Notes under the pieces: model-generated | Told to the model about the DNA's origin: nothing | Databases searched by the model: none | Seen by the model: the letters and a program-made list of their open reading frames with translations, nothing else | Shown here: positions 31,194-61,158 of the stretch, piece after piece | Layout: every line of letters starts with the position of its first letter | Numbering within the stretch: position 1 is the stretch's first letter | Position numbers and translations under genes: made by a program | Assembly (NCBI GenBank): GCA_002269645.1 | Contig: NIVC01001510.1 | Span: 1-64,000 of the forward strand | Length of the DNA: 64,000 nt | Origin: Macrostomum lignano | Lineage: Eukaryota | Direction of reading: 5' to 3'

Positions 31194-34100
31194 CTAAAAG
31201 ATGACCGCATCCAGCGGCGACTTCTTCAGGCCGCGAGTCCAAAGCAGCTCAAGCAGCAGGATTAGCAGGCCGCAGGTGTACAGGCAGCCGGTCACAATGT
31301 ACGCTCCGGTGACTCCGTCCATTTTAATGGGGTCCGCCTCGGCTGTGACGTCAGAAAACACGCATTCGGGATTCCTGCGCGGAAAGTACTTCAGGTTGAG
31401 TAAATTTAGGATACCAGATTCCTGGGATTTTTCCAGCCTGCGAGGTTTGGGGTAGGGAGATTTGATTTAGTATAGATCAGACTGGCAATCCTAATTATAT
31501 TCCCACTAAGTAACTCCTTCCTCGAGTCTTAGAGGACAAACGGATAGAGTGTTGTAGCTTTATCTAGAGCTCAGATTATTGTTAAACAAAATAAGCAATA
31601 CGTAGCATAGACAATCATTTACGAAGACGAGAGCCAGACGAATTCAAAGGAACGGAGCGCTCCACGATGTCATAAACAGCTGAGTAGGACTCCAGCGAGG
31701 CAGGCTCAAGGCTCAGCAGAGACGTAAATCATGACAGATACGATGGCACGAAAAGGCCGCTATTAAATCAGGGCAGACAGAAATTGGGTCCAGACTTTTC
31801 ATTTGCCCGAGCAATCATTGCTTGAGAGCTTGGGTGTGAATTAATGAGAAGGGCAAATCAGATTGGGATGCGGTAAGTGAGTACGGAGAGTAAAGAGAAC
31901 TTATGCGACTCAGTATGATGCCTCAATAACAGTGCCTTTTTTCCTTGATTGTATGATTGTATGAGCGATGTATGATTAATTCAGCCAGAAACATGCTCAG
32001 AGACAATCTGATAAGACCGCCAGTATGTCCTGATGATATCTTTATCGCCAAGCCAATCACTGACTCCCGTCGGATGGAAATGGATAGAACTTGGAATTCC
32101 TCGTCACAGCCAATCAGTGACTGGAGAGGGACAGGAGTTGAACTTATTCTACAGCCAAGCAGCGACTGGAGAGGGACAGGAGTCGAACTTATTCGTCAGC
32201 CAATCAGCGACTGGAAGGGGACAGGAGTTGAATTTATTCGTCGGCCAATCAGCGACTGGAAGGGGACAGGAGTTGAATCTCTTCGTCAGCCAATCAGCGC
32301 TAATCACCTAAAAGCCATTAGACTATACGCAGGATGGCTGTGGGCACCCTGGCGCAACACCATCGTCCCACAACCAGCACTGAGAGCAATTCTGAGCACA
32401 TACGAACTATACAAGCTCACACAGGGTGTACCACGGCCCTGACTTTCTAATCGTCAGTCGTGTACACTTTCTGCGTCTTGGGGGTTGGTCCTCATATGTG
32501 TGAATCGGCAAAGTTTTCATGCATACGTTCTAAATGAATATGTTTGCGCATTCGAAACATGGGGGGTCGTGGCGCGAGAGTCAGACGCGTTTACAGAAAA
32601 TTTCGCGTAAAAATTTTCCAAATGTACTTTTATTCCAATGCAGGCGGAGACTTACATAAAATCGAAGGCCCGACCGTAGAATGCGTCCTTAGGGTAGGCG
32701 AAGCTGAGAAAGTACGGACTGAACACTTCATCTGCTACATACAGCTCATTGCAATAGTTATTGTAATAGTACGAGTTCACGTTCTGGTCAGTGATGCACA
32801 CCTTGTAGGGATCGGGGTCGTCAAGCAGCTGAAATATCGGAGGGCAAGGTGCTAATTATATTCTCTGCCTCACTGTGAGATTCTCATATCTAACAGCTCA
32901 ATCTCAGCTGTGAGATTCTCATATCTACCAGCTGAATCTCAGCTGTGAGATTCTCATATTTACCCGCTGAATCTCAGCTGTGGGATTCTCATATCTACCC
33001 GCTGAATCTTAGCTGTGAGATTCTCATATTTACCCGCTGAATCTCAGCTGTGAGATTCTCATATCTAACAGCCCAATCTCAGCTGTGAGATTCTCATATC
33101 TAACGGCCCAATCTCAGCTGTGGGATTCTCATATCTACCCGCTGAATCTTAGCTGTGAGATTCTCATATTTACCCGCTGAATCTCAGCTGTGAGATTCTC
33201 ATATCTAACAGCCCAATCTCAGCTGTGAGATTCTCATATCTAACGGCCCAATCTCAGCTGTGGGATTCTCATATCTACCCGCTGAATCTTAGCTGTGAGA
33301 TTCTCATATTTACCCGCTGAATCTTAGCTGTGAGATTCTCATATTTACCCGCTGAATCTTAGCTGTGAGATTCTCATATCTACCCGCTGAATCTTAGCTG
33401 TGAGATTCTCATATTTACCCGCTGAATCTCAGCTGTGAGATTCTCATATTTACCCGCTGAATCTCAGCTGTGAGATTCTCATATTTACCCGCTGAATCTC
33501 AGCTGTGGGATTCTCATATTTACCCGCTGAATCTCAGCTGTGAGATTCCCATCCCATCGCACTGAAGAACCCACACCACTCACAGTTCGAGCGCAGATCT
33601 GCATGGTGTCCACCGCCACCATTTGACGCTGCAGCTCAAAGTATGGCCCAGAAGTTGACAACGTAATGAGCGCGTGGATGTTGGTTCCCTTGGCAACCAG
33701 CACCTTGTACTGCGGATTAGCCACCAAGTCGTTTAAGCCACGGATTTTCACTGGAGTCACCGAGACGGTCAGGTAGGCGGTAAGGTTGCCTGAAAAGAAA
33801 TTTTGCACTAATAATAAAAAACTAGCTGTTTTACTAATAGTAGCAAACGCAGGTACAGAATGCTACGGTAGTCCGGCGGGCAGGCAAAGTTCTGGCGAAA
33901 TTCCAGCTGTTCCTGTCTGTAGCGCATCTTTCCTAAGTAGTATTTCATGACTTTGTCTCTGGCGAAACCTCATTCAGCGCTGTGCAAAATAGCCAATCTT
34001 TTTATTTGAAATGAATTTGATTTCAATCACAAGGGGTTGTAGCCTAGGGGTTAGTGCGTCGGACTCACGACTTGGAAGGTCGTGGGTTCGATTCTTGTCA

Positions 34101-37100
34101 TACTGGAACAATTTGTATCCTTGAGCAAGACACTTAACTCTGCATTGCTTCAGTTCACCCAGCTGTAAAATGAGTGCCAGCATTAGCTGGGGTAATTGAG
34201 GGTGCGTGTGGCGACCCCCCCGTCCTTGGACTGAACAGCCGTACGCAGCATTCAGATGCGCCGCGCAATAGCTGCGGCTGAGCTGTCGGTTGCTCATCTG
34301 CCCACTAGCAGTTTTAGCATATTATAATCCATAAGGAGGACCTATTCAACATTTTCTACACAGGAGACTGACTCATGGCCCAGCAAGCATTTGGTGAGAT
34401 GCATACACGAGACTACATACGCTGCATGCGTCCCCTGCAACCCCAATCGACATACCGGTATAGGAGCCAAACACGATGACGGTAAACATCCACCAGAAGG
34501 CCATAACAGTTCTCGGGCTCATCGCGAACGGATAGAAGTCCTGGCCCTGCTGCAGGAAGCTGCCAACAGCCGACCAGATGTACTCCTGCAGCCAGATCTC
34601 ATCGGCGATGGCATACTCCAGCTGCAGGGTGTAGGCGGTGAAGGGGCTATAGTAAGCCAGCACGAAGGTGATGAAGGCCACAGCGAAAAGCGTCACTCCC
34701 AGCATGGCCCACAGGTCGATGGTGAACGGAGCGAAGATGTTCCACATGCGCGAGGCGGGCGGCGGCCGTTTGGCCAGGATGGTGAGGCCCGATGACGTAA
34801 TGGGGACTGAGAAGTCCATGGCTGGGATGCGCAGAGTTGTGATTGCGTAAACCAGCGATATGTCCGCGTTCTGGAAGCGGGTTGCGGTGGGGATGCGGCA
34901 GTTAGAGCTGGCAAGTGACAGGGTGCAGTGCGCGTCCTGGGATCACATTGAAGCATATGATTAACAGGTGTCAGTACTGTTTCTCACCCCTTTCTGCAGC
35001 TCCCCAACGCAGCCAGTGAACAGGGTGGAGTTGGGAACCGGGCCACCAAACTGCAGGTCGGGCGCCTGCTTGAATATCGATCTGAAGCGCAAATCGATTG
35101 AGAAGTAGCTGAGATTGTAGGCTACCGGATGCTCGACTTTCATCAGCTTACCGAAAGTTTAAATTGCGCATCAGGAAAGTGAACACGTCTACAATCTCGC
35201 CAGTCACATTGCCGCTCATGTCGGGGTTCACATTGGTATATGCGGTGAACGGTGGCACCTGCCGTAGGGTGTGTTAATGCGCATTTTGCATGCCTCTGAC
35301 TACATCACCTCATCCCGCATCAAGGAATCCGACAGTGGACCATCATACATCAGGAATCAGACAGAGGACCATCATACATCAGACATCAGGGAATTCCCTG
35401 ATATCAGGGAATCAGACAGTGGACCATCATACATCAGGGAATCAGACAGTGGACCATCATACATCAGGGAATCAGACAGTGGACCATCATACATCAGGGA
35501 ATCAGACAGTGGACCATCATACATCAGGGAATCAGACAGTGGACCATCATACATCAGGGAATCAGACAGTGGACCATCATACATCAGGGAATCAGACAGT
35601 GGACCATCATACATCAGGGAATCAGACAGTGACCATCATACATCAGGGAATCAGACAGTGGACCATCATACATCAGGGAATCAGACAGTGGACCATCATA
35701 CATCAGGGAATCAGACAGTGGACCATCATACATCAGGGAAACAGACAGTGGACCATCATACATCAGGGAATCAGACAGTGGACCATCATACACCAGGGAA
35801 TCAGACAGTGACGATCATACATTATCAGGGAATCAGACAGTGACCATCATACATCAGGGAATCAGACAGTGACCATCATACATCAGGGAATCAGACAGTG
35901 GACCATCATACACCAGGGAATCAGACAGTGACGATCATACATTATCAGGGAATCAGACAGTGGACCATCATACATCAGGGAATCAGACAGTGGACCATCA
36001 TACATCAGGGAATCAAACATATTTTCGCGCACAAGCCAGGAACGAAAGTGGTGGCGCGCGAAATTAAAACCAGTGATTGTGGCACGAGACTGCAGTACTC
36101 CAGCAGTCTAAACTTACTGAAGGTGCACAAACGGTCAGAGTCCGATTCTTGAAGTCCACAAAGGCGTTGGAGAAGACGAGACTCCGGCCGGACACTGTCC
36201 GAAGCACTCGCAGGCTGGCGTTGGCCGGGTAGAACCGGGCGCTCTCTACAAAGTCGACTGGCTGATCGGCCAGCTCGTTGAAGGTGGCCGCGAACTCAAC
36301 GTAGGGAGCCTCGAGACGGTTCGAGCTTGCGTTGTAGCTGATCACCGAGCGGAAGGTGTCCAGGCCTCGCAGCTGCGGATGAAGCATTTCATCTATTTCT
36401 TGATTTTTTTCAACAATGAAGTACCTTCGTTTAATATGGGAGCTTCTTTCTCTGCACGCGAGTCCGAAAGAGAGATTCAAAAGGCCTGGACCGACTGAAA
36501 GAAGACGTGTGGAATAGAAAGACTGATCGAAGCCATTGTACAAAAACGGGTCTTTTTGACCTCTACAAAGGGAAGTTTTTTTACAATTATGTAGCAAGTA
36601 TTTAAGTTCCAGGTACAAACGATACGAACAAATATGTATGCTAAACTTCCATTGAATTACCGAACTGATGAAGCCGGACACGGAGTTGCCACCGATCCAC
36701 GGCTGCAAGGGCAGGCAGGTAGCGTTGCTAGCTGGATGCGAGTCGCCTGTGCTGTTGGCGAAGTCGTTGAATGCTTTGCCAAGAGCAGTCAAGGCGTCCG
36801 TAAACCGGTACTCTAGGCTCTGGGGTAATGAGGACAATGCGAGGAAGCTTCGGCATCACGTCATCGTCAGCATGCGTAATTTACAAACATGAAATGTCAT
36901 CCTCTCGTAGCAATAGACAGCCGTTCCGAGGCCATAGACAATCGCTCACAACATGCCAGGAGTTCCGAGGCCATAGACAATCGCTCACAACATGCCAGGA
37001 GTTCCGAGGCCATAGACAATCGCTCACAACATGCCAAGAGTTCTGAGGCCATAGACAATCTCTCAAAACATGCCAGGAGTTCTGAGGCCATAGACAATCT

Positions 37101-40100
37101 CTCAAAACATGCCAAGAGTTCCGAGGCCATAGACAATCTCTCAAAACATGCCAGGAGTTCTGAGGCCATAGACAATCTCTCAAAACATGCCAAGAGTTCC
37201 GAGGCCATAGACAATCTCTCAAAACATGCCAGGAGTTCTGAGGCCATAGACAATCTCTCAAAACATGCCAGGAGTTCTGAGGCCATAGACAATCTCTCAA
37301 AACATGCCAGGAGTTCTGAGGCCATAGACAATCTCTCAAAACATGCCAGGAGTTTTGAGGCCATAGACAATCTCTCAAAACATGCCAGGAGTTCTGAGGC
37401 CATAGACAATCTCTCAAAACATGCCAGGAGTTCTGAGGCCATAGACAATCTCTCAAAACATGCCAGGAGTTCTGAGGCCATAGACAATCTCTCAAAACAT
37501 GCCAGGAGTTCTGAGGCCATAGACAATCTCTCAAAACATGCCAGGAGTTTTGAGGCCATAGACTATCTCTCAAAACATGCCAGGAGTTTTGAGGCCATAG
37601 ACAATCTCTCAAAACATGCCAGGAGTTTTGAGGCCATAGACAATCTCTCAAAACATGCCAGGAGTTTTGAGGCCATAGACAATCTCTCAAAACATGCCAG
37701 GAGTTCTGAGGCCATAGACAATCTCTCAAAACATGCCAGGAGTTTTGAGGCCATAGACAATCTCTCAAAACATGCCAGGAGTTTTGAGGCCATAGACAAT
37801 CTCTCAAAACATGCCAGGAGTTTTGAGGCCATAGACAATCTCTCAAAACATGCCAGGAGTTTTGAGGCCATAGACAATCTCTCAAAACATGCCAGGAGTT
37901 TTGAGGCCATAGACAATCTCTCAAAACATGCCAGGAGTTCTGAGGCCATATACAATCTCTCAAAACATGCCAGGAGTTTTGAGGCCATAGACAATCGCTC
38001 AAAGCACGCCATTTAAATCTCTATTTATTTGGCAACTCCCCCCAGATTATAAATGAAACGCATCTATAAAACGAACTGAGCCAACTCACCGTCACGTGAC
38101 TCTTGTCACACTCAGGAAATATGTCTTGCACAGCCGAAATACAGCGATCAGTCATGCCTAGCAACCCGTAGGTGGGGTCCCTGACAACCAGCAGATTGGA
38201 GGAAGCACCGGCTGGGGCGATGGGTTTCAGGCTGAAGAGACTCAAGCCGAAGCTCAAGAGTAGCCAGTGATAGTTCTGCTGCAGCAGCGTCGCGTTTCGC
38301 GCCTGCGTAACACAAGGGCTAGTAATGGCTATCAAGAATTTCGGCGTAATCTTAGTGCTTTTTCATTTTTATCCACTCTGATCCCATTTGCATCATCCAA
38401 CTGAACCATGATCCCATATTCTCGACTCTGATTCCATACTATAATGTTAATAATACAATCCTTATTTTTTAACCCCCATCATTCAAGTACTCAGCCATTG
38501 ATAATGAAGTACACGCTGTTTGCTTCCCGTATTAGGCCCTTGCGGATTACCTTAAACCTCGAGCCTCTTCAGTGGGAAGTCCTTTCAGCGCGCAGTAGCG
38601 TAGGTAGTGCTGCCACCAGTTCCTTCAGGTCTCGGCCTTCGATGAGGTGAGCTTCCCGTCGGAACGAAATAAACAAGTCAACGAACTCAGCACAGCGTGC
38701 AGATTTGCAGATTAATGAACAAGGCGTCCTGATCAGCAGATCCCCGCCGGGCTCAGGGGTGACTGGGAAGGCAGTGTTAGCCTCCCTTAGGCTTGGGCTT
38801 TAGTGGGGTCTCAGTCAGACCAGTACAAACGGATTCAGTACGCAAAGGGCACTTAGTTAGACACTGACGCACACGGGTTCTTAGTGAATTCTCCGCAGAT
38901 AAGAAGCCAATCATTGACGGAAACAAGGGGAGAGGGGTCCTATTTATAGCCGGGAAACACCCACGCACAAGACCTCGTGACTTGTTCTATTTTTAGAACT
39001 GACGTCACTTGAGGTCTCGGGGCAGGGTCTCAGTGCGCGCAAGACCTCGTGACTCGTTCTATTTTTAGAACTGACGTCACTTAAGGTCTCCGGCCAGAGT
39101 ACACGCGGCTGTGACTCAGTTGCTATTTTTAGCAACATGAGTCACTCCTCTCCTTAGAGAAGGGAGGGGTCCGAAAGCACGTGATTCTCCCGGTAAACAG
39201 GGCCAACGAGTGCAGTAAACATGTTTACTGCACTTTAGGACTCGAAGAACGCAGAGTCTGTCATGTGACTTGCTCACATGACAGAGGAAAACGGGACGGG
39301 AACGAAACAGAGACAGCCCACAGCAGAGAAGCTGAGGGCTGAGAACAGAGACGCAGAAGGGCAGAACAGGCCAAGGGCAGCAACAGACGGGCCAAGGGGG
39401 CGGGAAGCTGACCAGCGGCAGACAGCAACCCAGGGCGAGGGCGAGGGAGACTGCTGACAAAGTGGGACGCCTAACACCAACTAGCGGATCACTACACTCT
39501 CCCCGTTCAAATGAAGAGGCGGAGTGAGAGCGAAGCGCGCTTTATTTAATAAACGAAATAGTGATTTTACTAAATAAAATTATTACAAATGCCTGGCAAA
39601 AGGATGGCAGTGTCACAAGGCATGCAAATTATTACACGGCTGGGCCAAGGTCAGGATTGTGACCCAAAATGGCGAAGCACCAATAGCACCGGTGGGTTGC
39701 CCACGCCAAGGCAGAGCCCTAGAAAATCATAAAATCGGAGGGGCTGGCAAGTCCCTCGGGCGTACGCAGAATCAGGACCTCAGTCCAACAGCGGTTTGGG
39801 GGCGCCGGCCCGGAAAATGGGCGCCTAAATATACGGGATACCATAGACAGCCGGCAGAGCCCGTCACTGTGGAGAAGGGGGATGCAGAACTGCATCAGAG
39901 CAACAGCTCACGGGAAGATAAAAGAGTACGCATTGCGGGGGCGCTGGCCCGCTATTGAGGCGCCACATAAAGTAGAGCAGGGAAAAATCAGAGGGTGCCT
40001 GTCAGCACCAAGTCCACAGAGTCAGAGTTAATCGCTGCGTTGGGTTGATCGGTGCACGCAGATGCGGGCAGTGCGACTAACATACGTCTTGGCCCTAGGA

Positions 40101-43100
40101 TTAATAATTAGCCTCTCAGGCTGCCTACGATTCCTAGCCGGCCTACCGACATCTACAGACCCTAATGACGCTTCCACCGGAGTGGTGCATAACGACGGCC
40201 CAGGGGTCTGGACCACAGAAAAAGCAGCACTGGGAGCGGGAGCAGAAACGGGCGGAAAAGAAACAGCAGGCATAGACGCATCAAGAACAGGCTTATGCAG
40301 ATGACATTCACCATACGGCACTGGCTCACGCCGAAGTGCACTTGCCTGGTTCGCTGGTGTCGTGACCGGTCCACCTCCTGGCTGCACCTCCGGGATCGCC
40401 AAAGGCCGGAAGTGCCATCGGAAGGCCGGCCTTGCGTCGTAGCCGTCATCATCGTCATCGTCGGGGTCGTCCTGGTCGTCCTCGGGATTGGCGTCAGGGT
40501 CGCGGGTCCTGCGCCGTCGGGGACGTCGGGCGGCCGCCGGCGTTTCTTCGGTTTGTCGACTTCAGGGTCCGAAGTTCTCGTGTAGTCAGCGTCAGGCACG
40601 AGCAGAAGGTTCCGGCGATGGACGACTAGTTCGTCTCGTCTGGCTCTCGGGTTGGGCAGTCTCCGTCGAATCTTGTAGACGACCTCGCCCTTGGGCTCGA
40701 CGACTTCGTATAGGGCTTTGCGAGGTCGATGAAACTTCGCCGCCTCATCCGGTTCGAGTACCGGGTTGTTGAGGAAGACCAGATCACCGGGTTGAAGCTT
40801 CTTGGCGGCGGGCAGGTTCGAATAGTGCTCGTCTCGCAGTTGCTGGTGCAGATGCAGGCGCTCCTTGGCTAGCTCAGTCGCCTCGTCCAGGCGACGTTGG
40901 AAGTCCTTGACGTAGTCGGGCAGGTCGGCGTACTCGGGCAGCTTCTTCAGCGCGTTGTCGATCGGGAGTCGGAAATCACGGCCGAACACCAGGTAGTGAG
41001 GCGTGAAGCCGGTCACCGGGTGCACGCTGGAGCGGAGAGCCATCAGACAGGCCGGGAGGAAGGTGTCCCAGTCGTTGTGGTTGCGCTCGAGCAGACAGGT
41101 GAGGACACTCTTCAGCTGTTTGTTGAGGTTCTCGACTTGTCCGTTGGAAGCTGGATTGTACGGTGTTGTTGTCGTATGCCGAATGCCAAACAGGTCGCAG
41201 AACTTCTTGAAGGCCGAGCCGGTGAAGTTGGTGCCTTGGTCGGTGTGGATCCAGCATGGTACACCGAACTCAGGGATGAAGCGCTCCTGCAGAAGCTTGA
41301 TGACTGTTTTGGCTTTCTGGTTTCTCATCGGGTAGGCGAATGGATACTTCGACGTCGCATCGCACAAGGTCAGGATGTAGCGGTTGCCGCTCTTGCTCTT
41401 CTGCGCGATTGGTCCTACTACATCACAGTGGATTCTACCCAGAACTTCGCAGACTGGGAAGCTCTGGACCGGAACTCTCTCTCGCCGTCGCGATTTACTT
41501 TCAAGGCAGGTGCGGCACTTACTGATGAAGGTCTTGGTAGCACGGGCTAATCCGGGTCTCCAGAACCGTTCTCGTAGCCGCAGTAACGTCTTCGTCTCGC
41601 CAAGGTGTCCACACAGTGGCGAACTGTGGAGCTCCTGGAGCACCTGGGCGTCAAGGGCCTCAGGCAGAACAACCTTTGGCGGCTGCTGGCCATCGGACAG
41701 GTCAATCAGCAGCAGGCCGTTGTCCTCCTGCAGGTTTTCGTAGTATCCGAGCAGGTTCCGCTGCTCCTTCGTCAGGCGCAACCGGGCGTCGAACTCAGGC
41801 TTCGGGGCTTCGTCCTTGACCAGGTTGAGCACGTAGCTGATGGCTCGGTCAGCGCGCTGGGCTTCAACGAACTGTTGGCGAGTCATCGGCAGCTTCAGAA
41901 AATCAGTGAGCACAGCGCGGCATGGCTGAGGGGTCCGGATTCCCGCAGTCTCCGCTTTAATGGCTCCAGGTCGATCACACGGCACCGTCTTGTCGGCGTC
42001 AGGATTAGGTCGCTCCGAGGGACTTTGTCTCACGACGTCGGCGTACGTCCGTTGATCTCGAATCGAAGTTCTCTTCATCGCTCTCATGACAGAAGATTCC
42101 GCAGATGGAGCAGCGCGCATGCCTCCACTGCATAGCACAGGCGACTCTTGGCTGTAGGGCGGGACGCAACACGTGAAGCACGCCTCGTCGCAGGCAGCCG
42201 TAGCCGTCGGCTCAGTCGTCGTCAAAATTGGGTGAGTCTTCTCCAGCACTGGGCGGTGTCGCAAAGGGGGACTCGACTTTCCGCACAGGCGATGAGCAGC
42301 TGTCTGTCGGCCCGGGGGACAGAGCTTCGACCTTGCAGCTGGCGCGAGATTCTGGCCCCTGTCAACATGGCGAGAGATCTCAGCGAAAGGCTCAGGAGGG
42401 TTGTACTTAAGTTGCTGTCCTGGAGTTGCGTTGCGGGCCGTCATCAGAAGGGCTGCCGGCGCGGTGGCCTTTGAATCTTGGTCCGTGGGCGTCTCCAGAT
42501 TCCGAGACCTGAGGTCTTGGGCGTCGTCAAGGAGGTCTGTGTTCACAGTGGCCTCAAGGTCTTCGTCCAGGTTGGTCTCCAAGTTGCGGTAGGCGGCATG
42601 GGCATCGCGGCAGAGGGCTGTTGTCGCAGTGGCCTCTGAGTTGTCGTCCAGGCCGGTCTCCAGGCGTTGACTGCAGCGGTGGGCGTCGTGCTGGAAGGCT
42701 GCTGGCGCAGTGGCTTCCAGGTCTTCGTCCAGGTCAGTCTTGGCCTCCAAGCAGCGAGAGTGGACTGTCTTCTGGAGGCTGCTCTGGCAGTGGCCTCGGG
42801 TGTCGGGTCCAAATCCGGTTCCAGGTCGTGGTCGTCACCGGGTCGGGCGGTAGAACCAGGTTGCTCTAGCAGTCGGCCATGCTCGAAGAAGATCGGCGGG
42901 CCCTCCGGTCTTCTTGACAGGGCATCAGCGTTGGCGTGGTCCTTGCCTTTGCGGTGGTTGAGCTGGAAGCGGAACTCGCTTAGGCGCTCGATCCAGCGGC
43001 CTAAAATACCTGTGGCCTGAGTTTGGTTCAGTAACCACAGTAAGGCCCGATGATCGGATCGAACTTCAAACTTCTTGCCGATTAAGTAATGACGGAAATG

Positions 43101-47624: not shown

Positions 47625-47684
<60 letters not shown>

Positions 47685-50089: not shown

Positions 50090-50212
50090 GCTTTCGGCGG
50101 TGGGTGCCTGTCGTCGCAGCTCTGGTATCAACTCAAAACTTTGGGTGGCAAAAATTTATTCAACTAAACAGGCCAATGGGGATCCTTTTTTGTATATAAT
50201 CTCCATTTGCTA

Positions 50213-50585: not shown

Positions 50586-50835
50586 GGGAGACAGAGGGAG
50601 ACAGAGGGAGACAGAGGGAGACAGAGGGAGATAGAGGGAGACAGAGGGAGACAGCGGGAGACAGAGGGAGACAGAGGGAGACAGAGGGAGACAGAGGGAG
50701 ACAGCGGGAGACAGAGGGAGACAGAGGGAGACAGAGGGAGACAGAGGGAGACAGAGGGAGACAGAGGGAGACAGAGGGAGACAGAGGGAGATAGAGGGAG
50801 ACAAAGGGAGACAGAGGGAGACAGCGGGAGACAGC
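50586..50835. repeat. 10-bp repeat (GAGGGAGACA)
   Basis: Direct periodicity. Confidence 0.96.
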
Positions 50836-51349
50836 GTGGCAGGAGCCAGGTTAGGGGCAGCGGGACCCACAGGCTGACTGGGTGAGGTCACAGTCACTAA
50901 TTAATAAAAAATATATTTCAAGGCGCTTTATTTCAAGGAGCTTTTCAGAAACGTTAAGCCGGGATTAAACGGCAGATCAAATCTGTTTTCGCAGAGACTG
51001 AGTTCTTATTTTACACGAGAACCTAGAAAAGAAACATTGAAATCGGTGTGCAAGGTCACATGGTTGTAAAAAAACAATTTGCAGAGGAAAAATAGACGTA
51101 CTTACATACAGTACTGTAGATAGATGGCTAACTAATTGCAAGTAGAATGACTGCAGTGTTTACACCATTAGTGTTGTTTCTACTGAAGTAATTAAGAAAC
51201 AGAAATATGTATGTAAAGGTATGCTTAAGTGCAAAAATATGTAAAGTACTCAAGTGCACAACATACGCTCGTGTCAAATTACGAAAACATTTTAATACCG
51301 TTTTATTGCTTTAGAGTGATAAGACTTAAATGGATAGATGCTAGCATAC

Positions 51350-51520
51350 TAGAGTACTAAAGAAATAGATTACTAAAGTACTAGAGTACTAAAGTACTAG
51401 AGTACTAAAGTACTAGACTACTAGAGTAATATGGTATTAGAGTACTGGAATACTAGAGTACTAGCGTACTAGTGTACTAGAGTGCTAGAGTGCTAGAGTG
51501 CTAGAGTTCTAGAGTACTGG
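51350..51520. repeat. Degenerate 9-bp repeat (TACTAGAG[T])
   Basis: Direct observation. Confidence 0.8.
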
Positions 51521-51600
51521 AGTACGGAGGTACCAGCGCGACAAGGTGCTCAGAGTGCGAAAATGTTTTCCTCCAGTCAAAGGTAATTTCATTCTCTGCT

Positions 51601-54600
51601 TCAGTAGCAAGGCAGCCTATTAGGAGACTGTTTACAGCAAAAGGTCCACAGCAGCTCCAGCAGCAGAAGCAGAATGCCGCAGACGTACAGCCCGCCTGTG
51701 ACGATGAAAGCTCCAGCGACGCCCTCGATGGTGATGGGGTCGGCCTCGGCCGTGACGGCTGACACTTCGCACTCGGCGTTCGAGCGCGGGAAGTATTTGT
51801 ACTCGAGCCACTGGCTCAGGCCGGAGTCCTGCGACTTTTCCAGACTGCGAGGGTTTGGATAATTGGGGAAGTCAGTGCGAAAGTCTGAGAATGGTAGTGG
51901 AGAAGGGTAAAGAGCGGCAGAGAGCGGCAGAGTGACAGGGAGTGGCAGGGAACAGCAGGGAGTGACGGGGAGTGGCAGGGAGTGACGGGGAGTGGCAGGG
52001 AGTGACAGGGAGTGACAGGGAGTAACAGGGAGTGACAGGGAATGACAGGGAGTTACAGGGAATGACAGGGAGTTACAGGGAGTGACAGGGAGTGACAGGG
52101 AGTGACGGAGTGACAGGGAGTGACGGAGTAACAGGGAGTGACAGGGAGTGACAGGGAATGACAGGGAGTGACAGGGAGTGACAGGGAATGACAGGAAGCG
52201 ACATGTAGTGACAGGGAGTGATAGGGAGTGACAGGGAGTGATATGGAGTGACAGGGAGTGACAGGGAGTGACAGGGAGTGACAGGGAGTGACAGGGAGTG
52301 AGTGGCAGAAAGCTGGAGTAAAAGGTAAGGATGAGGCCAGCGTTGGGGCTCACAGGAAGCTGAAGGCAGGCAGGTAGAAGGCGCCCTTAGGAAAGGCGAC
52401 TCCAAGCGAGTAGGCGTTGAACGTCTGGTCGGCGATGTACACTTTGTTGCAGTAGGCGTTGTAGAAGTGAATATTGATGTTCTGGTCCACGATGCACACC
52501 TGGTAGGGGTTCGAATCCACGGCTACCTTCAATGCAGAGTAATGTGTTAGGTGCGCTAGTGTTAGATGTGTTACAGACTTCTACATTGAAAAGCAGCCAT
52601 TGGGACATCGGCTCACGGTCTGGGAGCAGATCGGCATGGAGTCCACAACCTTCATCTGCTTTCTCAGCTCGTAATAGGGCCCGGACGTGTCGAGCAGGAT
52701 TTGCGCGTATATGTTGGTTCCCTTGGAGACCAGGACTTTGTAGTGCGGGTTGGCGAGCACATCTTCCAGGGTTCTGATTGGAAGCTGCGTCACGGACACG
52801 GTCAGGTAGGCGGTCAGGTTTCCTTCAATGGTGGCGGGGTCTGTTAGATTCGATTCTGTTCTATTTTATTCTATTCTACTCATTATGAAACTTCTCATCT
52901 GCACTACTGTAAGTAGTAGATATAAGCGAATCACACCTGTGTACGCGGCAAGCAAAATGACGGTGAGAAACCACCAGAACGCCAAAATGCTTCTCGGGCT
53001 CATCGCGAACGGATAGAAATCCTGGCCCTGCTGCAACAGGCTGCCAAGAAAGGACCAGATGTACTCTTGAAGCCAGACCTCGTCGGCAAACGAGTAGTTC
53101 ACTCCTAGATTCCAGGCGGTGAACGGGCTGAAGTAGGCGAGCAGGTAAGTGAAGAAGGCAGCGGTGCACAGGACACCGAGCAGCAGCAGCCACACGTCGT
53201 AGCTGAGTGGAGCGAAAATGTTCCACATCCGGGTTGAGGGCGGCGGCCGGCGCACCAAGATGGTATTGCCAGATGAGGCCAGGGGGAAGGAAAAGTCCAC
53301 AACCTGACTGCGCAGTGTGGTGATTGCGTACGGCATCGACAGGTGCGCGTTCTGCGGGAAGGAGCGGATCGATTTGCGGCATTCCGTTCTAACCACTCCG
53401 CCCTTATCTCTAACCACTCCACCCTTATCTCTAACCACTCCACCCTTATCTCTAACCACTCCGCCCTTATCTATCTATATTTATAATCACTCTGCGCTCT
53501 TATCTCCAATCACTCTGCTCTTATCCCCAACCACTCTGTTCTATCTCTTACCAAAGTAGATTTTTACCTCGAAGCAATTCGCCCTCATCTCTATTCACTT
53601 TACCCTTCCTCAAACGTCTCATCTCATCACTTCATCCTGAACTGTTCCAGCAGCTGCTCACCCACCCCTTTCTGAACTTCGCCAATGCAGCCGCTGAACA
53701 AGTCTGAGCCGGGAATCGGGGCACCGAACTGGCGGTCCGGCGCCTGCCTGAAAATCGATCTGGAACGGTCGGTGGCGGCTTGTTAAGTAGTTCAGTTAAG
53801 TTAAGTAGTCCTTGTGTGCAGCATTGTCATTCTCTAGTACGAATCATTTAATTCCAACCCGCCAGGCGTACCGAAACTTCAGCTTCGGCTCGAATATTTT
53901 AAACCATTCGGCGATCTCGCCGGTGACATTGCCGGTCAGGTCATCGTTGACATTCGTGTACTCCGTGAACGGCGGGATCTGGAATGATGAGGATCTATTC
54001 ACGTTTGGAGAAGTCCAGTCTCAGTTCTACATGTCTACATATCAATGCTATAGATTAGCAATCCATAAGATACAGATTGGCAATCCATTAACTATAGTTT
54101 AGCAATCCATTAGCTATAGTTTAGCAATCCATTAACTATAGATTAGCAATCGATGGGCTATAGATTAGCAATCCATTAGCTATAGTTTAGCAATCCATTA
54201 GCTATAGATTAGCAATCCATTAGCTATAGATTAGCAATCCATTAGCTATAGATTAGCAATCCATAGACTGTATTCATGGTCTGTAAATTTAGTGCCATCG
54301 ATCAGAGATTAATTTCTATGTCGAGGTTAATTGCTGAGATGTCAAGGCTGAAAGTTCGAAAGCTATTTTTAGTTTATTCAAAAAATATCCCATTCTTCTT
54401 TGGCTTTCCAACGGGGGGGCGCCGATTGCTGGTTTAATTTCTGTTTTTATGAGCAATTCATGAGCATTAATAGTCAGGTATCCATGGCTGCATTCCAGTC
54501 ACTCACAATCGGTGCACAAACGGTCAGAGTCCGATTCTTGAAGTCCACAAAGGCGTTGGAGAAGACGAGACTCCGGCCGGACACTGTCCGAAGCACTCGC

Positions 54601-57600
54601 AGGCTGGCGTTGGCCGGGTAGAACCGCGCGCTCTCTACAAATTCGACTGGCTGATCGGCCTGCTCGTTGAAGGTGGCCGCGAACTCAACGTAGGGAGCCT
54701 CGAGACGGTTCGAGCTGGCGTTGAAGCTGATCACCGAGCGGAAGGTGTCCAGGCCTCGCAGCTGCGGATGACGCGTTTTAGATTAGCAATCAATTGATCT
54801 ATAGATTAGCAATCAATTGATCTATAGATTAGCAATCAATTGATCTATAGATTAGCAATCCATTGATCTATAGATTAGCAATCCATTGATCTATAGATTA
54901 GCAATCCAGTTGTCTATAGATTAGCAATCCACTGGTCTATAGATTAGCAATCCAGTTGTCTATAGATTAGCAATCCATTGGTCTATAGATTAGCAATCCA
55001 GTTGTCTATAGATTAGCAATCCAGTAGTCTATAGATTAGCAATCCATTGGTCTATAGATTAGCAATCCAGTTGTCTATAGATTAGCAATCCAGTAGTCTA
55101 TAGATTAGCAATCCATCGGTCTATAGATTAGCAATCCATCGGTCTATAGATTAGCAATCCATCGGTCTATAGATTAGCAATCCATTAGTCTATAGATTAG
55201 CAATCCAGTTGTCTATAGATTAGCAATCCAGTAGTCTATAGATTAGCAATCCAGTTGTCTATAGATTAGCAATCCATCGGTCTATAGATTAGCAATCCAT
55301 CGGTCTATAGATTAGCAATCCATTGGTCTATAGATTAGCAATCCAGTTGTCTATAGATTAGCAATCCAGTAGTCTATAGATTAGCAATCCAGTTGTCTAT
55401 AGATTAGCAATCCAGTAGTCTATAGATTAGCAATCCAGTAGTCTATAGATTAGCAATCCATTGGTCTATAGATTAGCAATTCATTGGTCTATAGATTAGC
55501 AATCCATTGGTCTATAGATTAGCTTTCCACCTGCTATTAAATACGATTTGGCCCTAGAGTCAACAGTCAAGCCTTATAAGACATTATGACAGCATTTTAT
55601 CCCTATTTTCCCCAGCTTCCCCAATACTTACCGACTTGATAAAGCGGGCCACTGATCCCCCGCTGGTCCATGGCTGCAGCGGGTTGCAGCTGGAGTTGCT
55701 TTCACTGAAGGTCACCGCAGCCGATGCGCTTGTCAAGTTTTTGTACGCTTCAGACACGGCTAACAGAGCCTCCGTGAATCGCATTTCTATGCTCTGGAAA
55801 TGCGAGCAAGTGGTTAAAGTTGGACTAGTTGTGCTGATTATTAAACTAATAGACTAGTTGATGTAAACAGTCATTAGTCTAATCCTGCGTAAATTGAGAA
55901 GTCATTAGATCATAATCCAAATTAATATGGGATCCGAATACCTACTAATCTGGGATCAGAATCCCCACTTATATGAAATCAGAATCCTCACTAATCTGGG
56001 ATCAAAATCCCAACTAATCTGGGATCAGAATCCTTACTAATCTGGGATTAGAATCCTTAATAATCTGGGATTAGAATCCCTACTAATCTGGGATTAGAAT
56101 CCCTACTAATCTGGGATCAGAATCCTCACTAATCTGGGATAAGAATCCCTACTAATCTGGGATCAGAATCCTCACCAATCTGGGATTAGAATCCTCAATA
56201 ATCTGGGATTAGAATCCCTACTAATCTGGGATTAGATTCCCCACTAATCTGGGATAAGAATCCCTACTAATCTGGGATCAGAATCCTCACCAATCTGGGA
56301 TTAGAATCCCCACTAATCTGGGATTAGAATCCCCAGTAATCTGGGATTAGAATCCTCAATAATCTGGGATTAGAATTCTCAATAATCTGGGATTAGAATC
56401 CTTAATAATCTGGGATTAGAATCCCTACTAATCTGGGATTAGAATCCCTACTAATCTGGGATCAGAATCCTCACTAATCTGGGATAAGAATCCCTACTAA
56501 TCTGGGATCAGAATCCTCACCAATCTGGGATTAGAATCCTCAATAATCTGGGATTAGAATCCCTACTAATCTGGGATCAGAATCCCTACTAATCTGGGAT
56601 CAGAATCCCCACTAATCTGGGATCAGAATCCCTACTAATCTGGGATCAGAATCCCTACTAATCTGGGATCAGAATCCCTACTAATCTGGGATCAGAATCC
56701 CTACTAATCTGGGATCAGAATCCCTACTAATCTGGGATCAGAATCCCTACTAATATGGGATCAGAATCCCCACTAATCTGGGATCAGAATCCCAACTAAT
56801 CTGGGATCAGAATCCCTACTAATCTGGGATCAGAATCCCAACTAACACACGATCACTTCCTCCTTACCGTGACGCCGTCCCTGCCGCAGTGGGGGAAGAC
56901 GTCCCGCAGAGGCGGCGGGCACAGTGCAGCCCCCGTCAGCCCGGCTGTGGGGCTCCGAGCCACCAGGATGTTGGCGGCTCCCCAGGCGTCCAGCCGAGCG
57001 ATGGAGGTCAGCGCGGCCAGGCTGAGACCCGGTGAGTCCGGCAGCAGCCAGTGGAAGTCCTGGCGCAGCAGGCCTGCAGCCAGCGCCTGCGGGACGGGTG
57101 GGCAGGATGGGTTCGCAGGTGGGGCTTCGGGTGCTGCCGAAAGTCCATACAGATAGGCTGGACCATAGATCTCTGACAAGCGATCTTAAGAATTGGCATC
57201 ACAATAACAAAATTTAAGTTACGAGTAACATTGGGAACTCACTGTCTCCAGGATCTGAATCACGTTGTCCGCAGTGGCGAAGACCACATTGAATCGTACT
57301 CGACTTTTGCTCAGCCCGGTGAGAATATCGCTGAGATTTTTACCTGCCTCGAACTGGAAGGCCATAACGCTGATGCCGCTGGCTGAGAGGTCGTTCTGGA
57401 AGGCCTCGAGCAGCGGCAGACCTGTGAGGCGGTTGGAACGGCGTCAGAGTTCTTTGAGATTCCCTGAAGGCGAGTGACATACTGGACAGAGGAGTGAAAA
57501 TCTGTATATAAATCTCAAGGATGAGATTCTCAACTCGCATCTCAGGGATGAGATTCTCAAACTGGCATCTCAGGGGTGAGATTCTCGACTGGCATCTCAG

Positions 57601-60600
57601 GGATGAGATTCTCGACTGGCATCTCAGGGATGAGATTCTCAAACTGGCATCTCAGGGGTGAGATTCTCGACTGGCATCTCAGGGTTGAGATTCTTGACTT
57701 GCACCTCAGGGTTAAGATTCTTGACTTGCACCTCAGGGTTAAGATTCTTGACTTGCACCTCAGGGTTAAGATTCTTGACTTGCACCTCAGGGTTAAGATT
57801 CTTGACTTGCACCTCAGGGTTAAGATTCTTGACTCGCATCTCAGGGTTGAGACTATTGACTCGCATCTTAGGGGTGAGATTCTCGAATCATCGCATCTCA
57901 GGGTTGAGATTCTTCACTCATTTCTACGCCGGAACTCACTCTGGAATTTGTCGTAGAAGATGGCGGCGTCTGAAACCCGATGATACTTCAATGCCTCAAC
58001 GGATGCTCGAAGCAGCAGGCGGGGTTCCACAGCGCCGATAAGCTCGAACTCTGTGAACAGGTAAAGTAAACAGGCGGAATGCCGTTTGGGCAAATTCGCG
58101 CATTGCTCTGCTTAAATAATACCGGAAGAATCTACACACTACCGGAAGAAACTAATGGAAGAATCTACACACTCCAGGAAGAAAATACCGGAAGAAACTA
58201 CCAAAAGAATCTACACACTACAGGAAGAAACTACCAAAAGAATCTACACACTCCAGGAAGAAACTACCGGAAGAAACTACCAAAAGAATCTACACACTAC
58301 AGGAAGAAAATACCGGAAGAATCTACACACTCCAGGAAGAAACTACCAAAAGAATCTACACACTACAGGAAGAAACTACCAAAAGAATCTACACACTCCA
58401 GGAAGAAACTACCAAAAGAATCTACACACTCCAGGAAGAAACTACCAAAAGAATCTACACACTACAGGAAGAAACTACCAAAAGAATCTACACACTACAG
58501 GAAGAAACTACCAAAAGAATCTACACACTACAGGAAGAAACTACCAAAAGAATCTACACAATACAGGAAGAAACTACCGGAAGAAACTACCAAAAGAATC
58601 TACACACTACAGGAAGAAACTACCAAAAGAATCTACACACTCCAGGAAGAAACTACCAAAAGAATCTACACACTACAGGAAGAAACTACCAAAAGAATCT
58701 ACACACTACAGGAAGAAACTACCAAAAGAATCTACACACTACAGGAAGAAACTACCAAAAGAATCTACACAATACAGGAAGAAACTACCGGAAGAAACTA
58801 CCAAAAGAATCTACACACTACAGGAAGAAACTACCAAAAGAATCTACACACTACAGGAAGAAACTACCAAAAGAATCTACACAATACAGGAAGAAACTAC
58901 CAAAAGAATCTACACACTACAGGAAGAAACTACCAAAAAAATCTACACACTCCAGGAAGAAAATACCGACAGAATCTCTAGCTACTCGTACATGAAGCTA
59001 CAAACATATTGGACAAACCTGACTTGGATGTTGCGTCGCACAGGTCGTTAGGGATGACAATTGTTGGCAGTTCGAGGCTCCTGCCCAACCTCATCAGAGT
59101 CTCCATCAGCGAGCAGCTTCCAACCCCGATGATGCCGCTGAGACCGGTTTCTTGACAGACTGAATTAAAACAGAAATATTTTTTCGATATAGTTAAGAAT
59201 TCGAGCTTATACCAGCCGGCTTGTGACAGGAAAATGCTGGAAATTTGAACTGCCAACTAGATGAAGGATTTGGGTCACTCAATTACAGCATTGGAATGGG
59301 TCAGTAGAGAATGGGTCAGTAGGGGATGGGTCAGTAGGGAATCGGTCAGTAGGGGATCGGGGGATGAGTCAGTATGGGATGGGTCAGTAGGGGATCGGGG
59401 GATGAGTCAGTATGGGATGGGTCAGTAGGGGATCGGGGGATGAGTCAGTATGGGATGGGTCAGTAGGGGATCGGGGGATGAGTCAGTAGAGGATGGGTCA
59501 GTAGGGGATCGGGGGATGAGTCAGTATGGGATGGGTCAGTAGGGGATCGGGGGATGAGTCAGTATGGGATGGGTCAGTAGGGGATCGGGGGATGAGTCAG
59601 TATGGGATGGGTCAGTAGGGGATCGGGGGATGAGTCAGTATGGGATGGGTCAGTAGGGGATCGGGGGATGAGTCAGTATGGGATGGGTCAGTAGGGGATC
59701 GGGGGATGAGTCAGTATGGGATGGGTCAGTAGGGGATCGGGGGATGAGTCAGTATGGGATGGGTCAGTAGGGGATCGGGGGATGAGTCAGTATGGGATGG
59801 GTCAGTAGGGGATCGGGGGATGAGTCAGTAGAGGATGGGTCAGTAGGGGATCGGGGGATGAGTCAGTAGAGGATGGGTCAGTAGGGGATCGGGGGATGAG
59901 TCAGTAGAGGATGGGTCAGTAGGGGATCGGTCAGTAGGGGATCGGGGGATGAGTCAGTAGGGGATGGGTCAGTAGGGGATCGGGGGATGAGTCAGTAGAG
60001 GATGGGTCAGTAGGGGATCGGTCAGTAGGGGATCGGGGGATGAGTCAGTATGGGATGGGTCAGTAGGGGATCGGGGGATGAGTCAGTAGAGGATGGGTCA
60101 GTAGGGGATCGGTCAGTAGGGGATCGGGGGATGAGTCAGTATGGGATGGGTCAGTAGGGGATCGGGGGATGAGTCAGTATGGGATGGGTCAGTAGGGGAT
60201 CGGGGGATGAGTCAGTATGGGATGGGTCAGTAGGGGATCGGGGGATGAGTCAGTAGAGGATGGGTCAGTAGGGATCGGTCAGTAGGGGATCGGGGGATGA
60301 GTCAGTATGGGATGGGTCAGTAGGGGATCGGGGGATGAGTCAGTAGAGGATGGGTCAGTAGGGGATCGGGGGATGAGTCAGTATGGGATGGGTCAGTAGG
60401 GGATCGGGGGATGAGTCAGTATGGGATGGGTCAGTAGGGGATCGGGGGATGAGTCAGTAGAGGATGGGTCAGTAGGGGATCGGTCAGTAGGGGATCGGGG
60501 GATGAGTCAGTAGAGGATGGGTCAGTAGGGGATCGGGGGATGAGTCAGTAGAGGATGGGTCAGTAGGGGATCGGGGGATGAGTCAGTATGGGATGGGTCA

Positions 60601-61158
60601 TTAAGGGAATGGGTCAGTAGAATAACCATCAGGAGGTGGGTCATCTACAGGCACTGTGTTCGTGAAGGCCTAAATGCAGTCATGATTGCCTGTTTACCCC
60701 GTACAATCGCGCACCTAGATAAAGTTGATGAAGTCTTTATTTTGCTATCGACATGCAATTATCCCCAGATTAATTGAGGCCAATACTCCATAAAGTGTCA
60801 TTCAAGGCCTAACACACGACACCCGAACTGTAAGCAAATACCACCCGAGTTTTGTCTCAGATTAATGAGGATTATCGACTAGCGGATGCCCTTCCTCTGA
60901 CTCACCCAGTCTCGCCGCTGTCAAAGCGAGGCCCCTGCTGGCGTTAATTAGCCGATAATCCAGCGACTGGCCGGATCCCCGGGGCAAGACTCGCCAATTA
61001 TTGTTCACTAATCGGCTGACGGCCCGCTGGATCGTGTCGGGCGGCAGCGCCTCGTCCTCTATCACCATGGCAACCTTGAAGGCGGCGCAGTCAATGGGCG
61101 GAGCTGCCGACCAGAGCGACAAGAGGAGCAGCGAAATTGCAACCTGCCGGCTGTCCAT
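51601..61158 (-). CDS. Ionotropic glutamate receptor-like channel subunit, paralogue B, 13 exons, about 852 aa
   Basis: Exons 61158-60906, 59159-59019, 58050-57940, 57421-57243, 57086-56868, 55793-55632, 54761-54507, 53978-53872, 53759-53666, 53351-52937, 52822-52617, 52526-52354, 51844-51601; same intron positions and phases as A, 2559 nt. Motifs DFHWLL, GCIGEV, VVDFSFP, SLLQQG, AYTGNLTAYL, DSGL. Confidence 0.93.
51930..52300. repeat. 10-bp repeat (GGGAGTGACA), gene B intron 12
   Basis: Direct periodicity. Confidence 0.94.
53385..53470. repeat. 21-bp repeat (CTCTAACCACTCC[A/G]CCCTTAT), gene B intron 9
   Basis: 3-4 copies. Confidence 0.88.
54048..54265. repeat. 22-bp minisatellite (CTATAGATTAGCAATCCATTAG), gene B intron 7
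   Basis: Direct periodicity; same core as the intron 6 array. Confidence 0.93.
54778..55522. repeat. 23-bp minisatellite (TCTATAGATTAGCAATCCA[TTGG/GTTG]), gene B intron 6
   Basis: Direct periodicity. Confidence 0.96.
55930..56842. repeat. 23-bp minisatellite (CTACTAATCTGGGATCAGAATCC), gene B intron 5
   Basis: Direct periodicity. Confidence 0.96.
57518..57912. repeat. 27-bp minisatellite (GGGATGAGATTCTCGACTGGCATCTCA), gene B intron 3
   Basis: Direct periodicity. Confidence 0.93.
58110..58975. repeat. 33-bp A-rich minisatellite (GAAGAAACTACCAAAAGAATCTACACACTACAG), gene B intron 2
   Basis: Direct periodicity. Confidence 0.96.
59295..60620. repeat. 38-bp G-rich minisatellite (GGGATGGGTCAGTAGGGGATCGGGGGATGAGTCAGTAT), gene B intron 1
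   Basis: Direct periodicity built from shorter GG[G/A]TCAGTA subunits. Confidence 0.96.

Follow-up and report, generated by a model that had tools for sequence, protein, structure and literature searches.

Two tandem ionotropic glutamate receptor genes of Macrostomum lignano, probable members of a flatworm-lineage subfamily

Within the 64,000-nt stretch of contig NIVC01001510.1 analyzed here (positions 1 to 64,000, the window), the flatworm Macrostomum lignano carries two neighbouring genes of the ionotropic glutamate receptor (iGluR) family, which we call gene A and gene B. Both lie on the minus strand, head to tail and 1.5 kb apart. Exon models were made from stop-to-stop six-frame open reading frames (ORFs), after which the GT...AG pairs that kept the frame between anchor peptides were enumerated, and gave the following structures:

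51601-61158, minus strand: gene B, 13 coding exons, 852 amino acids (aa), ATG at 61158 and stop at 51601
Gene B exons, minus strand: 61158-60906, 59159-59019, 58050-57940, 57421-57243, 57086-56868, 55793-55632, 54761-54507, 53978-53872, 53759-53666, 53351-52937, 52822-52617, 52526-52354, 51844-51601
31194-50089, minus strand: gene A, 13 coding exons, 848 aa, ATG at 50089 and stop at 31194
Gene A exons, minus strand: 50089-49840, 48249-48109, 47800-47690, 47599-47421, 38302-38090, 36819-36661, 36372-36118, 35258-35152, 35081-34988, 34870-34456, 33789-33584, 32828-32656, 31437-31194

All introns of the two genes are GT-AG (24/24) and no in-frame stop is present. The intron phases are identical between A and B, 10 of the 13 exons have the same length and the encoded proteins share 63% identity. 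Pfam recognizes ANF_receptor, Lig_chan-Glu_bd and Lig_chan in both proteins, each above the curated cut-offs, and both show the domain order of the iGluR superfamily, i.e. amino-terminal domain (ATD), S1, M1, pore loop, M3, S2 and M4. The ATD is of the periplasmic-binding-protein type I fold, and the signal peptide predicted for the products of the genes is poly-Leu. A phmmer comparison of gene A with the Protein Data Bank (PDB) returned a single continuous alignment, residues 34-834, to GluK1/GluK2 (E ~1e-34), a match that far exceeds chance. A first-pass annotation, made from the letters alone, had proposed two complete 13-exon genes at this locus, and the splice models, open frames, Pfam domains and PDB alignment bear this out. 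The ends it gave coincide exactly with the stop of A (31194) and the start of B (61158), and all the motifs it quoted were found on the minus strand (YAITTLR; DLQFG/DRQFG; KGTN; ITDQ/IVDQ; QQGQD; S/A-YTGNLTAY; VCAP; GC[V/I]G; IC[A/S]; VCI).

The same annotation described both genes as intact. This is true of the coding sequences and reading frames only, since intron 4 of gene A is occupied by a long terminal repeat (LTR) retrotransposon, and an element so near the splice donor could reduce or truncate the transcripts:

38505-47411, minus strand: Ty3/gypsy-type LTR retrotransposon of 8,907 bp, inside intron 4 of gene A and in sense orientation to the gene
38505-39496 and 46420-47411: its LTRs, 992 bp each, 100% identical, with TG...CA ends; 4-bp target-site duplication ATAA

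The open ORFs of the element encode, in order on the minus strand, zf-CCHC (gag), RVT_1 with RT_RNaseH, and Integrase_H2C2 with rve; LTRs, target-site duplication and the order gag - reverse transcriptase - RNase H - integrase are those of a Ty3/gypsy element. It begins 9 nt past the exon-4 donor (GTAAGT), and the intron measures 9.1 kb in gene A versus 156 bp in gene B. The coding sequence, donor and acceptor of gene A were left untouched by the insertion.

The best database match was the M. lignano protein A0A1I8IN61 in UniProt (P0001 in our set), which is 97% identical to gene A in the best local alignment. This model is a B/A chimera, where exons 10-13 of gene B are fused, through the intergenic region, to exons 1-7 of gene A, and its residues 1-335 match the C-terminal half of gene B. 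Within its range it has the same exon 4/5 and 5/6 junctions in gene A as our model; at the exon 1/2 junction it takes another acceptor, and the paralogues favour the one modelled here. Two further public models of the locus are garbled. Public M. lignano models seen in this work (P0001, P0002, P0003, P0152, which is A0A1I8HR46, and P0006, which is A0A1I8I4V2) are often chimeras of adjacent paralogues or frame-shifted fragments.

Substitution rates between A and B (Nei-Gojobori) were dN = 0.27 for nonsynonymous and dS ~1.0 for synonymous sites. The resulting dN/dS of 0.26, together with a dS of about 1, indicates an old duplication and purifying selection on both copies. The divergence is uneven along the genes. 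Exon 7 is 96.5% identical at the DNA level (dS 0.06) and exon 4 is 86-88% identical (dS 0.38), whereas the other exons show 55-77% identity, with dS from ~0.7 to saturation. That these two exons are far more alike than the rest points to gene conversion between the tandem copies:

36122-36389 (gene A) and 54511-54778 (gene B), minus strand: gene-conversion tract in exon 7, covering the end of the ATD and the linker from the ATD to the ligand-binding domain (LBD); 97.4% by blastn, reaching 17 bp into intron 6
47414-47611 (gene A) and 57236-57433 (gene B), minus strand: weaker tract in exon 4; 88% by blastn

Relatives were sought by an exhaustive HMMER scan of 1.84 billion representative proteins with the chimeric A0A1I8IN61 as query. 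The scan returned 2,885 relatives at E <= 1e-3, only 46 of which reached E <= 1e-30. Among the top matches that were looked up, the closest were all M. lignano paralogues, with 41-52% identity to A/B (A0A1I8FU98, A0A1I8JJ64, A0A1I8I4V2, A0A1I8HR46 and NCBI BOX15_Mlig017883g2). Word-indexed protein searches with full-length gene A, with a 15-sequence alignment and with an 11-sequence LBD-pore alignment also returned almost only M. lignano models. Some of the top M. lignano matches are fusions of adjacent paralogues, which suggests that the family is arranged in tandem arrays elsewhere too. Next in similarity came a more remote M. lignano protein (34%), then a cestode (Spirometra) protein, unnamed assembly-derived proteins, and mollusc, nemertean and annelid proteins that NCBI has automatically named 'delta-1-like' or 'kainate-like'. 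The earlier proposal of a lineage-specific, divergent iGluR family is thereby upheld, as the nearest relatives are M. lignano paralogues followed by flatworm sequences.

For placement within the iGluRs, neighbour-joining (NJ) trees on BLOSUM62 score distances were built with 100 bootstraps from a trimmed MAFFT alignment of the LBD-pore region (400 columns). References were taken from the alignment of Ramos-Vicente et al. 2018 (PMC6307864, Figure 1-source data 3) and comprised the Arabidopsis glutamate receptor-like proteins (GLRs) GLR2.7 and GLR5, amphioxus GluE1, GluE7 and GluE8, human GluA1, a centipede AMPA receptor, human GluD2, the amphioxus kainate receptor GluK_Bbe, human and Capitella GluN1, and amphioxus Phi (GluF1_Bbe and GluF2_Bla). 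The Macrostomum subfamily was recovered in 100% of the bootstraps and was joined by the distant M. lignano protein at 81-84%. Addition of Spirometra and the unnamed sequences gave a flatworm clade (73-77%), which grouped with 19 spiralian sequences from molluscs, annelids and nemerteans (70-75%), and a small protostome group from spider, gastropod and nemertean joined these at 84-85%. This small group (P0134 from Uloborus, P0067 from Gigantopelta, P0073 from Lineus, and P0054) has the gate ATY[ST]GNLIAFL[TA]V, and its members may be receptors of the ionotropic receptor (IR) type.

The A/B family falls inside none of the reference classes AMPA, kainate, delta, NMDA1, Epsilon and amphioxus Phi. 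Reference clades that leave it outside were AMPA (93-96%), delta (90-91%), NMDA1 (100%), Epsilon (75-76%) and Phi (100%), and so did the kainate core, though with weak support (55-60%). Membership of AMPA, kainate, delta or NMDA1 is rejected on these trees. When equal-sized (2-sequence) profile hidden Markov models were scored against gene A, they ranked the groups as the trees do: the spiralian profile was best with 199 bits, followed by the IR-like protostome group with 154, delta 126, kainate 122, Epsilon 114, Phi 109, AMPA 99 and NMDA1 93; plant GLRs were the most distant group compared with the family (57 bits). Membership of Epsilon is likewise rejected, as the amphioxus references form their own clade and the profile gave 114/91 bits versus 199 for the spiralian one. 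The Epsilon subfamily has been reported lost in protostomes. Phi was judged by amphioxus references only, and is rejected because these cluster beside AMPA/kainate, score 109/104 bits and have unlike pocket motifs. Delta and kainate profiles outscore Epsilon and NMDA1 against gene A, and the plant-rooted NJ tree does not group the family with them. Instead, that tree lets the flatworm, spiralian and IR-like sequences branch outside a weakly supported (41-46%) cluster of all other metazoan references. This basal position is probably a result of long-branch attraction, given NJ with crude distances, long branches and low deep support. A Pecten relative is equidistant from kainate, delta and AMPA structures. 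Our conclusion from these comparisons is that the A/B family most plausibly represents a lineage that is AKDF-like yet belongs to none of A, K, D and amphioxus-type F.

The pore and gate motifs map as follows:

34538-34552, minus strand: pore-loop tip QQGQD of gene A, with Gln at the Q/R site and Asp at +4; gene B 53019-53033
33773-34462, minus strand: M3 gate S-YTGNLTAY of gene A, split by intron 10 (exon 10 ends ...SYT-G, exon 11 opens G-NLTAY)
52806-52943, minus strand: M3 gate A-YTGNLTAY of gene B

The pore loop is the most conserved segment among seven Macrostomum paralogues, with 83% mean pairwise identity and 19 of 28 positions invariant, and its sequence FLQQGQDFYPFAMSPR is almost invariant between them, while the two LBD segments reach only 36-41% identity. 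Such conservation is good evidence of selection on ion conduction. The QQGQD tip, with Gln at the Q/R site and Asp at +4, resembles that of unedited AMPA/kainate receptors.

The first-pass annotation had described the gate as rewritten. Compared with the canonical SYTANLAAF, [S/A]YTGNLTAY does carry changes at positions 4, 7 and 9 (G4, T7 and Y9), and these are specific to the subfamily, where other paralogues read [YF][TN]GD[LM]TA[HK]. The common signature is YTG[N/D][L/M]TA[Y/H/K], with G4 and T7 fixed; only A and B have the canonical Asn at position 5, which is Asp in the remaining members. Yet six of the nine positions are canonical, and none of the changes is without parallel: G4 is found in the protostome YSGNLIAF group, T7 in wild-type Arabidopsis GLR2.7 and GLR5 (SYTANLTS) and Y9 in several spiralian relatives. 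Moreover, at the Lurcher position, the third Ala (A8) of SYTANLAAF, where Thr gives a constitutively open gate, A, B and all paralogues keep Ala; their Thr is at position 7. Judged by alignment, 'rewritten' is too strong and 'subfamily-specific variant' is the accurate description.

The residues expected to line the ligand pocket are located here:

34829-34849, minus strand: S1 motif Y-A-I-T-T-L-R of gene A, where Arg517 corresponds to GluA2 Arg485 and Ala512 to Thr480 (HMMER against GluK2, MAFFT columns)
53310-53330, minus strand: equivalent S1 motif of gene B
35045-35059, minus strand: DLQFG of gene A, with Phe at the position of GluA2 Tyr450
53723-53737, minus strand: DRQFG of gene B
33680-33691, minus strand: K-G-T-N of gene A, equivalent of 'GST' on helix F; gene B 52713-52724
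32787-32801, minus strand: V-C-I-T-D of gene A, with Asp724 at the position of GluA2 Glu705 and with the extra cysteine Cys721
52485-52499, minus strand: VCIVD of gene B

The pocket residues had been mapped earlier, and the mapping was confirmed column by column. The amino-acid anchors are aligned, with Arg517 (A) and Arg521 (B) at Arg485 and Asp724 (A) and Asp728 (B) at position 705. The Thr480 position is Ala in both proteins, as in GluK2/3 (PLAITYVR), which are glutamate receptors, and the Pro478 position is Pro in B and Val in A. The aromatic cap is Phe, and Tyr, Phe and Trp are all found among relatives. On helix F, both proteins have G-T-N; the 19 spiralian sisters usually have G-[T/S]-N there, and so do other M. 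lignano members. Ahead of helix I, A has T-D and B has V-D, [T/S]-D being the norm of the clade. Arg, Ala, G-T-N and Asp are constant over the five closest paralogues, which suggests a shared agonist class rather than an IR-like diversification of the pocket.

In the alignment of Wang et al. 2026 (PMC13648236), every glutamate-selective receptor has Gly as the first helix-F residue, whereas the receptors selective for glycine or other ligands all lack it; the authors describe a Gly there as 'unsuitable for glycine activity', and S→G mutations reduced glycine potency. In their data Asp at 705 is known in glutamate-selective receptors (YD, ED and TD motifs), TD occurs in both glutamate- and alanine-selective receptors, the alanine-selective one being Epsilon, and the upper-lobe residues Tyr471, Pro499 and Thr501 (full-length numbering) do not predict selectivity. 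By the same study (PMC13648236), a glycine/D-serine pocket has Ser rather than Gly first on helix F and a non-polar residue third, and its Asp is often preceded by Trp. The residues of A and B are G-T-N with T/V-D, versus S-S-V with W-D in GluN1 and S-A-V with W-D in GluD2.

The pocket had been read before as of a non-glutamate type and likened to GluN1 and GluD. The analogy (S-S/A-V with W-D) fails because the first 'GST' residue is still Gly. The wider label does not stand either: G-[T/S]-N with [T/S]-D is the rule in the spiralian sisters, so these residues are inherited characters of the clade and not a rewrite in A/B, and Ala in GluK2/3 and Asp705 in glutamate-selective receptors go against it as well. 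From the alignment, the truly atypical pocket residue is Asn at the Thr655 position. As it reads, the pocket argues against a GluN1/GluD-like glycine/D-serine site and would be compatible with glutamate, aspartate or another polar amino acid.

Cysteines beyond the canonical LBD pair were also noted in the first annotation:

36121-36129, minus strand: Cys433 (VCAP) of gene A, proposed partner of Cys496; gene B 54510-54518
35003-35014, minus strand: Cys496 (GCVG) of gene A; gene B equivalent 53681-53692
33590-33598, minus strand: Cys707 of gene A, proposed to form a second extra pair with Cys721; gene B 52623-52631
32748-32756 and 31359-31367, minus strand: canonical LBD pair Cys736 and Cys793 of gene A; gene B 52446-52454 and 51766-51774

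The canonical lobe-2 pair (Cys718-Cys773 equivalents), Cys736/793 in A and Cys740/797 in B, is found in almost all iGluRs aligned. The four extra cysteines occur together in A, B, P0005 and P0170 (P0170 by pairwise alignment). P0006 has only the Cys707/Cys721 pair and P0008 has Cys496, Cys707 and Cys721, its model being without the N-terminal strand that bears Cys433. In every aligned sequence outside the Macrostomum subfamily the four are absent. The two extra pairs are thus present in both copies and specific to the subfamily by their co-occurrence, a pattern consistent with two added disulfides. Another feature of the C-terminal part is a short cytoplasmic tail (31197-31238 in gene A, 51604-51645 in gene B), which ends ...[KR]xPLDxx[IV][FY] in A and in paralogues (P0170, P0007) and reads SPNRLPCY in B; the hydrophobic C-terminus might be a trafficking or PDZ-type signal.

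Comparison with other receptors shows how far the likeness extends. The M. lignano paralogues share with A/B the conserved pore loop, the gate YTG[N/D][L/M]TA, G-T-N, C-I-x-D, the extra cysteines and the tail ...PLDxx[IV][FY]; they differ by Asp at gate position 5, several of the models are fragments or fusions, and none is characterised. The spiralian 'delta-1-like / kainate-like' receptors (Pecten maximus XP_033737179.1, Haliotis asinina XP_067672970.1, Lineus longissimus XP_064635760.1, Mytilus californianus XP_052069391.1, Owenia, Tubulanus) resemble A/B in helix F (G-[T/S]-N), in the pair preceding helix I ([T/S]-D), in the Arg, in having an ATD and in a length of ~840 aa, but are only 25-31% identical to them over the LBD-pore region. 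They mostly have a canonical gate, [ST][TY]TANLAA[FY], P-F-T-I-T in S1 and a pore tip that is usually xQGG/xQGA instead of QQGQD, and they are without the two extra Cys pairs. Vertebrate GluK1/2/5, GluD1 and GluA2-4 share the full-length architecture, Gln at the Q/R site, Asp at +4, Arg485 and the LBD disulfide. Kainate, delta and AMPA structures of vertebrates are weak and nearly equal matches to gene A (E 1e-34 to 1e-31), and these receptors differ at 3/9 gate positions and on helix F (GST/GAT/SAV versus GTN); the C-tail of A/B is very short. The Arabidopsis GLRs have Thr at gate position 7 as in A/B, and a different pore loop.

The protostome IRs, like the A/B family, are a lineage-specific, iGluR-derived radiation in tandem arrays, and the YSGNLIAF group shares Gly4. 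In most divergent IRs the ATD is gone, and so are the Arg/Asp residues that bind amino acids. A and B keep the ATD, and the Arg and Asp are kept in all close paralogues; in contrast to variant IRs, defined by ATD loss (co-receptors excepted), loss of at least one of the Arg/Thr/Asp ligand contacts and chemosensory expression, this would speak against the design typical of divergent IRs. Zeng et al. 2021 (PMC8437780) described mollusc Phi (GluF) and 'Zeta' receptors as lineage-specific tandem expansions of AKDF type outside AMPA, kainate and delta, with non-canonical 653/655 residues. The A/B family is like these in being a tandem-expanded spiralian non-A/K/D lineage, a likeness drawn by description only, and the spiralian sister clade may overlap with the mollusc GluF/'Zeta' classes. 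Full-text literature searches turned up no paper that describes such a flatworm iGluR subfamily, and no flatworm terms were found in the metazoan iGluR phylogeny of Ramos-Vicente 2018. One loosely defined 'IR' has been reported from Schistosoma mansoni (PMC5080760).

Long minisatellite arrays with periods of 10-39 bp and up to 165 copies occur in many introns (at least five per gene) and in much of the intergenic DNA. The window also holds an unrelated gene, with a 19-bp minisatellite (5423-6311) in open frame between its ankyrin repeats and kinase domain. Further six-frame matches to 'DRQFG' at 25.8-27.1 kb were discarded, as they are not genes and derive from translation of a minisatellite (array 25729-27479):

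48314-49634, 36923-38011, 35318-36019, 32869-33552, 59322-60483, 58118-58977, 55908-56845, 54779-55523 and 51930-52301: examples of intronic minisatellites
13972-18747, 28238-29891 and 319-2598: other minisatellites
2616-7034, plus strand: unrelated gene, with ankyrin repeats (2616-3077) and a protein kinase domain (6321-7034)

Taken together, we consider it probable that A and B are functional-looking tandem paralogues that encode subunits of a flatworm-lineage iGluR subfamily expanded in Macrostomum. Gene structure, architecture, clade placement, purifying selection and motif distribution are shown by the analysis, and channel function, ion selectivity and agonist class are inferred in the following way. 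Each subunit would consist of a signal peptide, ATD, bilobed S1S2 LBD, M1, re-entrant pore loop, M3, M4 and a short tail. The standard iGluR mechanism is the most likely one, in which an alpha-amino acid would be clamped between the lobes by the Arg of ITTLR and the Asp of I[T/V]DQ, and lobe closure would pull M3 and open a tetrameric cation pore with the QQGQD tip. Because this tip is like that of unedited AMPA/kainate receptors, the pore is probably Ca2+-permeable and polyamine-sensitive. The YTGNLTAY gate variant, fixed in the subfamily, would be expected to tune gating and not to abolish it. Several points weigh against this interpretation. Channel function is deduced from sequence, and the trees are distance-based NJ trees with weak deep nodes (16-46%). 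Three substitutions fall in the most conserved motif of iGluRs, and the young sense-oriented LTR element 9 nt from the donor may truncate or lower gene A transcripts. In addition, a search for a characterised precedent for Asn at the Thr655 position found none, and the prediction of ligands from pocket motifs is unreliable (PMC13648236).

Other explanations differ from this in agonist, in mode of action or in which gene works. That A and B, like insect IRs, are receptors for glycine, D-serine, small neutral amino acids or external chemicals, possibly as obligate A+B heteromers with altered gating, appears rather doubtful to us. Asn stands where a Thr contacts the gamma-carboxylate of glutamate, Glu705 has become Asp, 'TD' is also present in the alanine-selective Epsilon receptor (PMC13648236), the second-best profile belongs to the protostome group with the IR-like gate YSGNLIAF, which joins the clade at bootstrap 84-85, and a lineage-specific tandem expansion is typical of chemoreceptor families. 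However, A and B keep, in first place on helix F, the Gly that non-glutamate-selective receptors lack (PMC13648236), they have neither a Trp ahead of the Asp nor a Ser / non-polar pair, their ATD is complete, and unlike in divergent IRs, Arg/Asp, G-T-N and Ala are conserved in the five closest paralogues. A more far-reaching version is that A, B and the Macrostomum paralogues form an undescribed flatworm-specific class, sister to an unnamed spiralian class and related to the stock of protostome IRs, which binds an agonist other than glutamate or glycine through the G-T-N / T-D pocket and, by the G4/T7 gate and two extra LBD disulfides, gates unlike any characterised iGluR; this we regard as unlikely.

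The proteins might also not be classical agonist-opened channels at all, and instead act as GluD-like trans-synaptic organisers, as silent auxiliary subunits or as leaky channels closed by ligands. The three substitutions in SYTANLAAF, with the Thr at A7 adjoining the Lurcher position, and the fact that delta has the best profile score among the classical classes could be taken in this direction, and the wild-type Trichoplax AKDF receptor is constitutively active and ligand-inhibited (PMC13648236). We hold this to be very improbable, as the strongest conservation among the paralogues is in the pore loop, which is hard to explain without ion conduction, and the Lurcher position A8 is unchanged. 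Thr7 is wild type in Arabidopsis GLR2.7 and GLR5, and plant GLRs gate normally. Not likely, though quite possible, is that only gene B works on this haplotype and that gene A, silenced or truncated by the LTR element, is becoming a pseudogene; for gene B this is compatible with a functional subunit of the flatworm-lineage subfamily. Sense-oriented intronic LTR insertions often cause premature polyadenylation or aberrant splicing, and here the exon-4 donor is followed after 9 nt by an 8.9-kb sense element whose LTRs are identical. Yet donor GTAAGT and acceptor are untouched, all 13 exons are open, A0A1I8IN61, built on another M. lignano assembly, has the same exon 4-exon 5 join, and with 0 differences in 992 bp the insertion is too young for decay to show yet.

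The A/B branch is lineage-specific and uncharacterised within a very well known family; it is useful for iGluR evolution and for the rules of ligand selectivity, and unsurprising in kind. As far as the alignments reach, the gate signature and the extra cysteines are the true novelties of the subfamily. At this locus the public gene models are wrong, one being a B/A chimera, and one of the two genes bears a very young transposon that may affect its expression. If the placement is true, there is a branch of full-length iGluRs that is confined to protostomes, is carried by Platyhelminthes and other Spiralia, and stands apart from AMPA, kainate, delta, NMDA, Epsilon and amphioxus Phi. The G-[T/S]-N, [T/S]-D signature would then be a natural test case for the still unreliable rules that connect LBD residues to agonists, and the Macrostomum subfamily supplies natural variants of the most conserved gating motif. 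Since M. lignano is a transgenic-capable laboratory flatworm, their function would be accessible in vivo.

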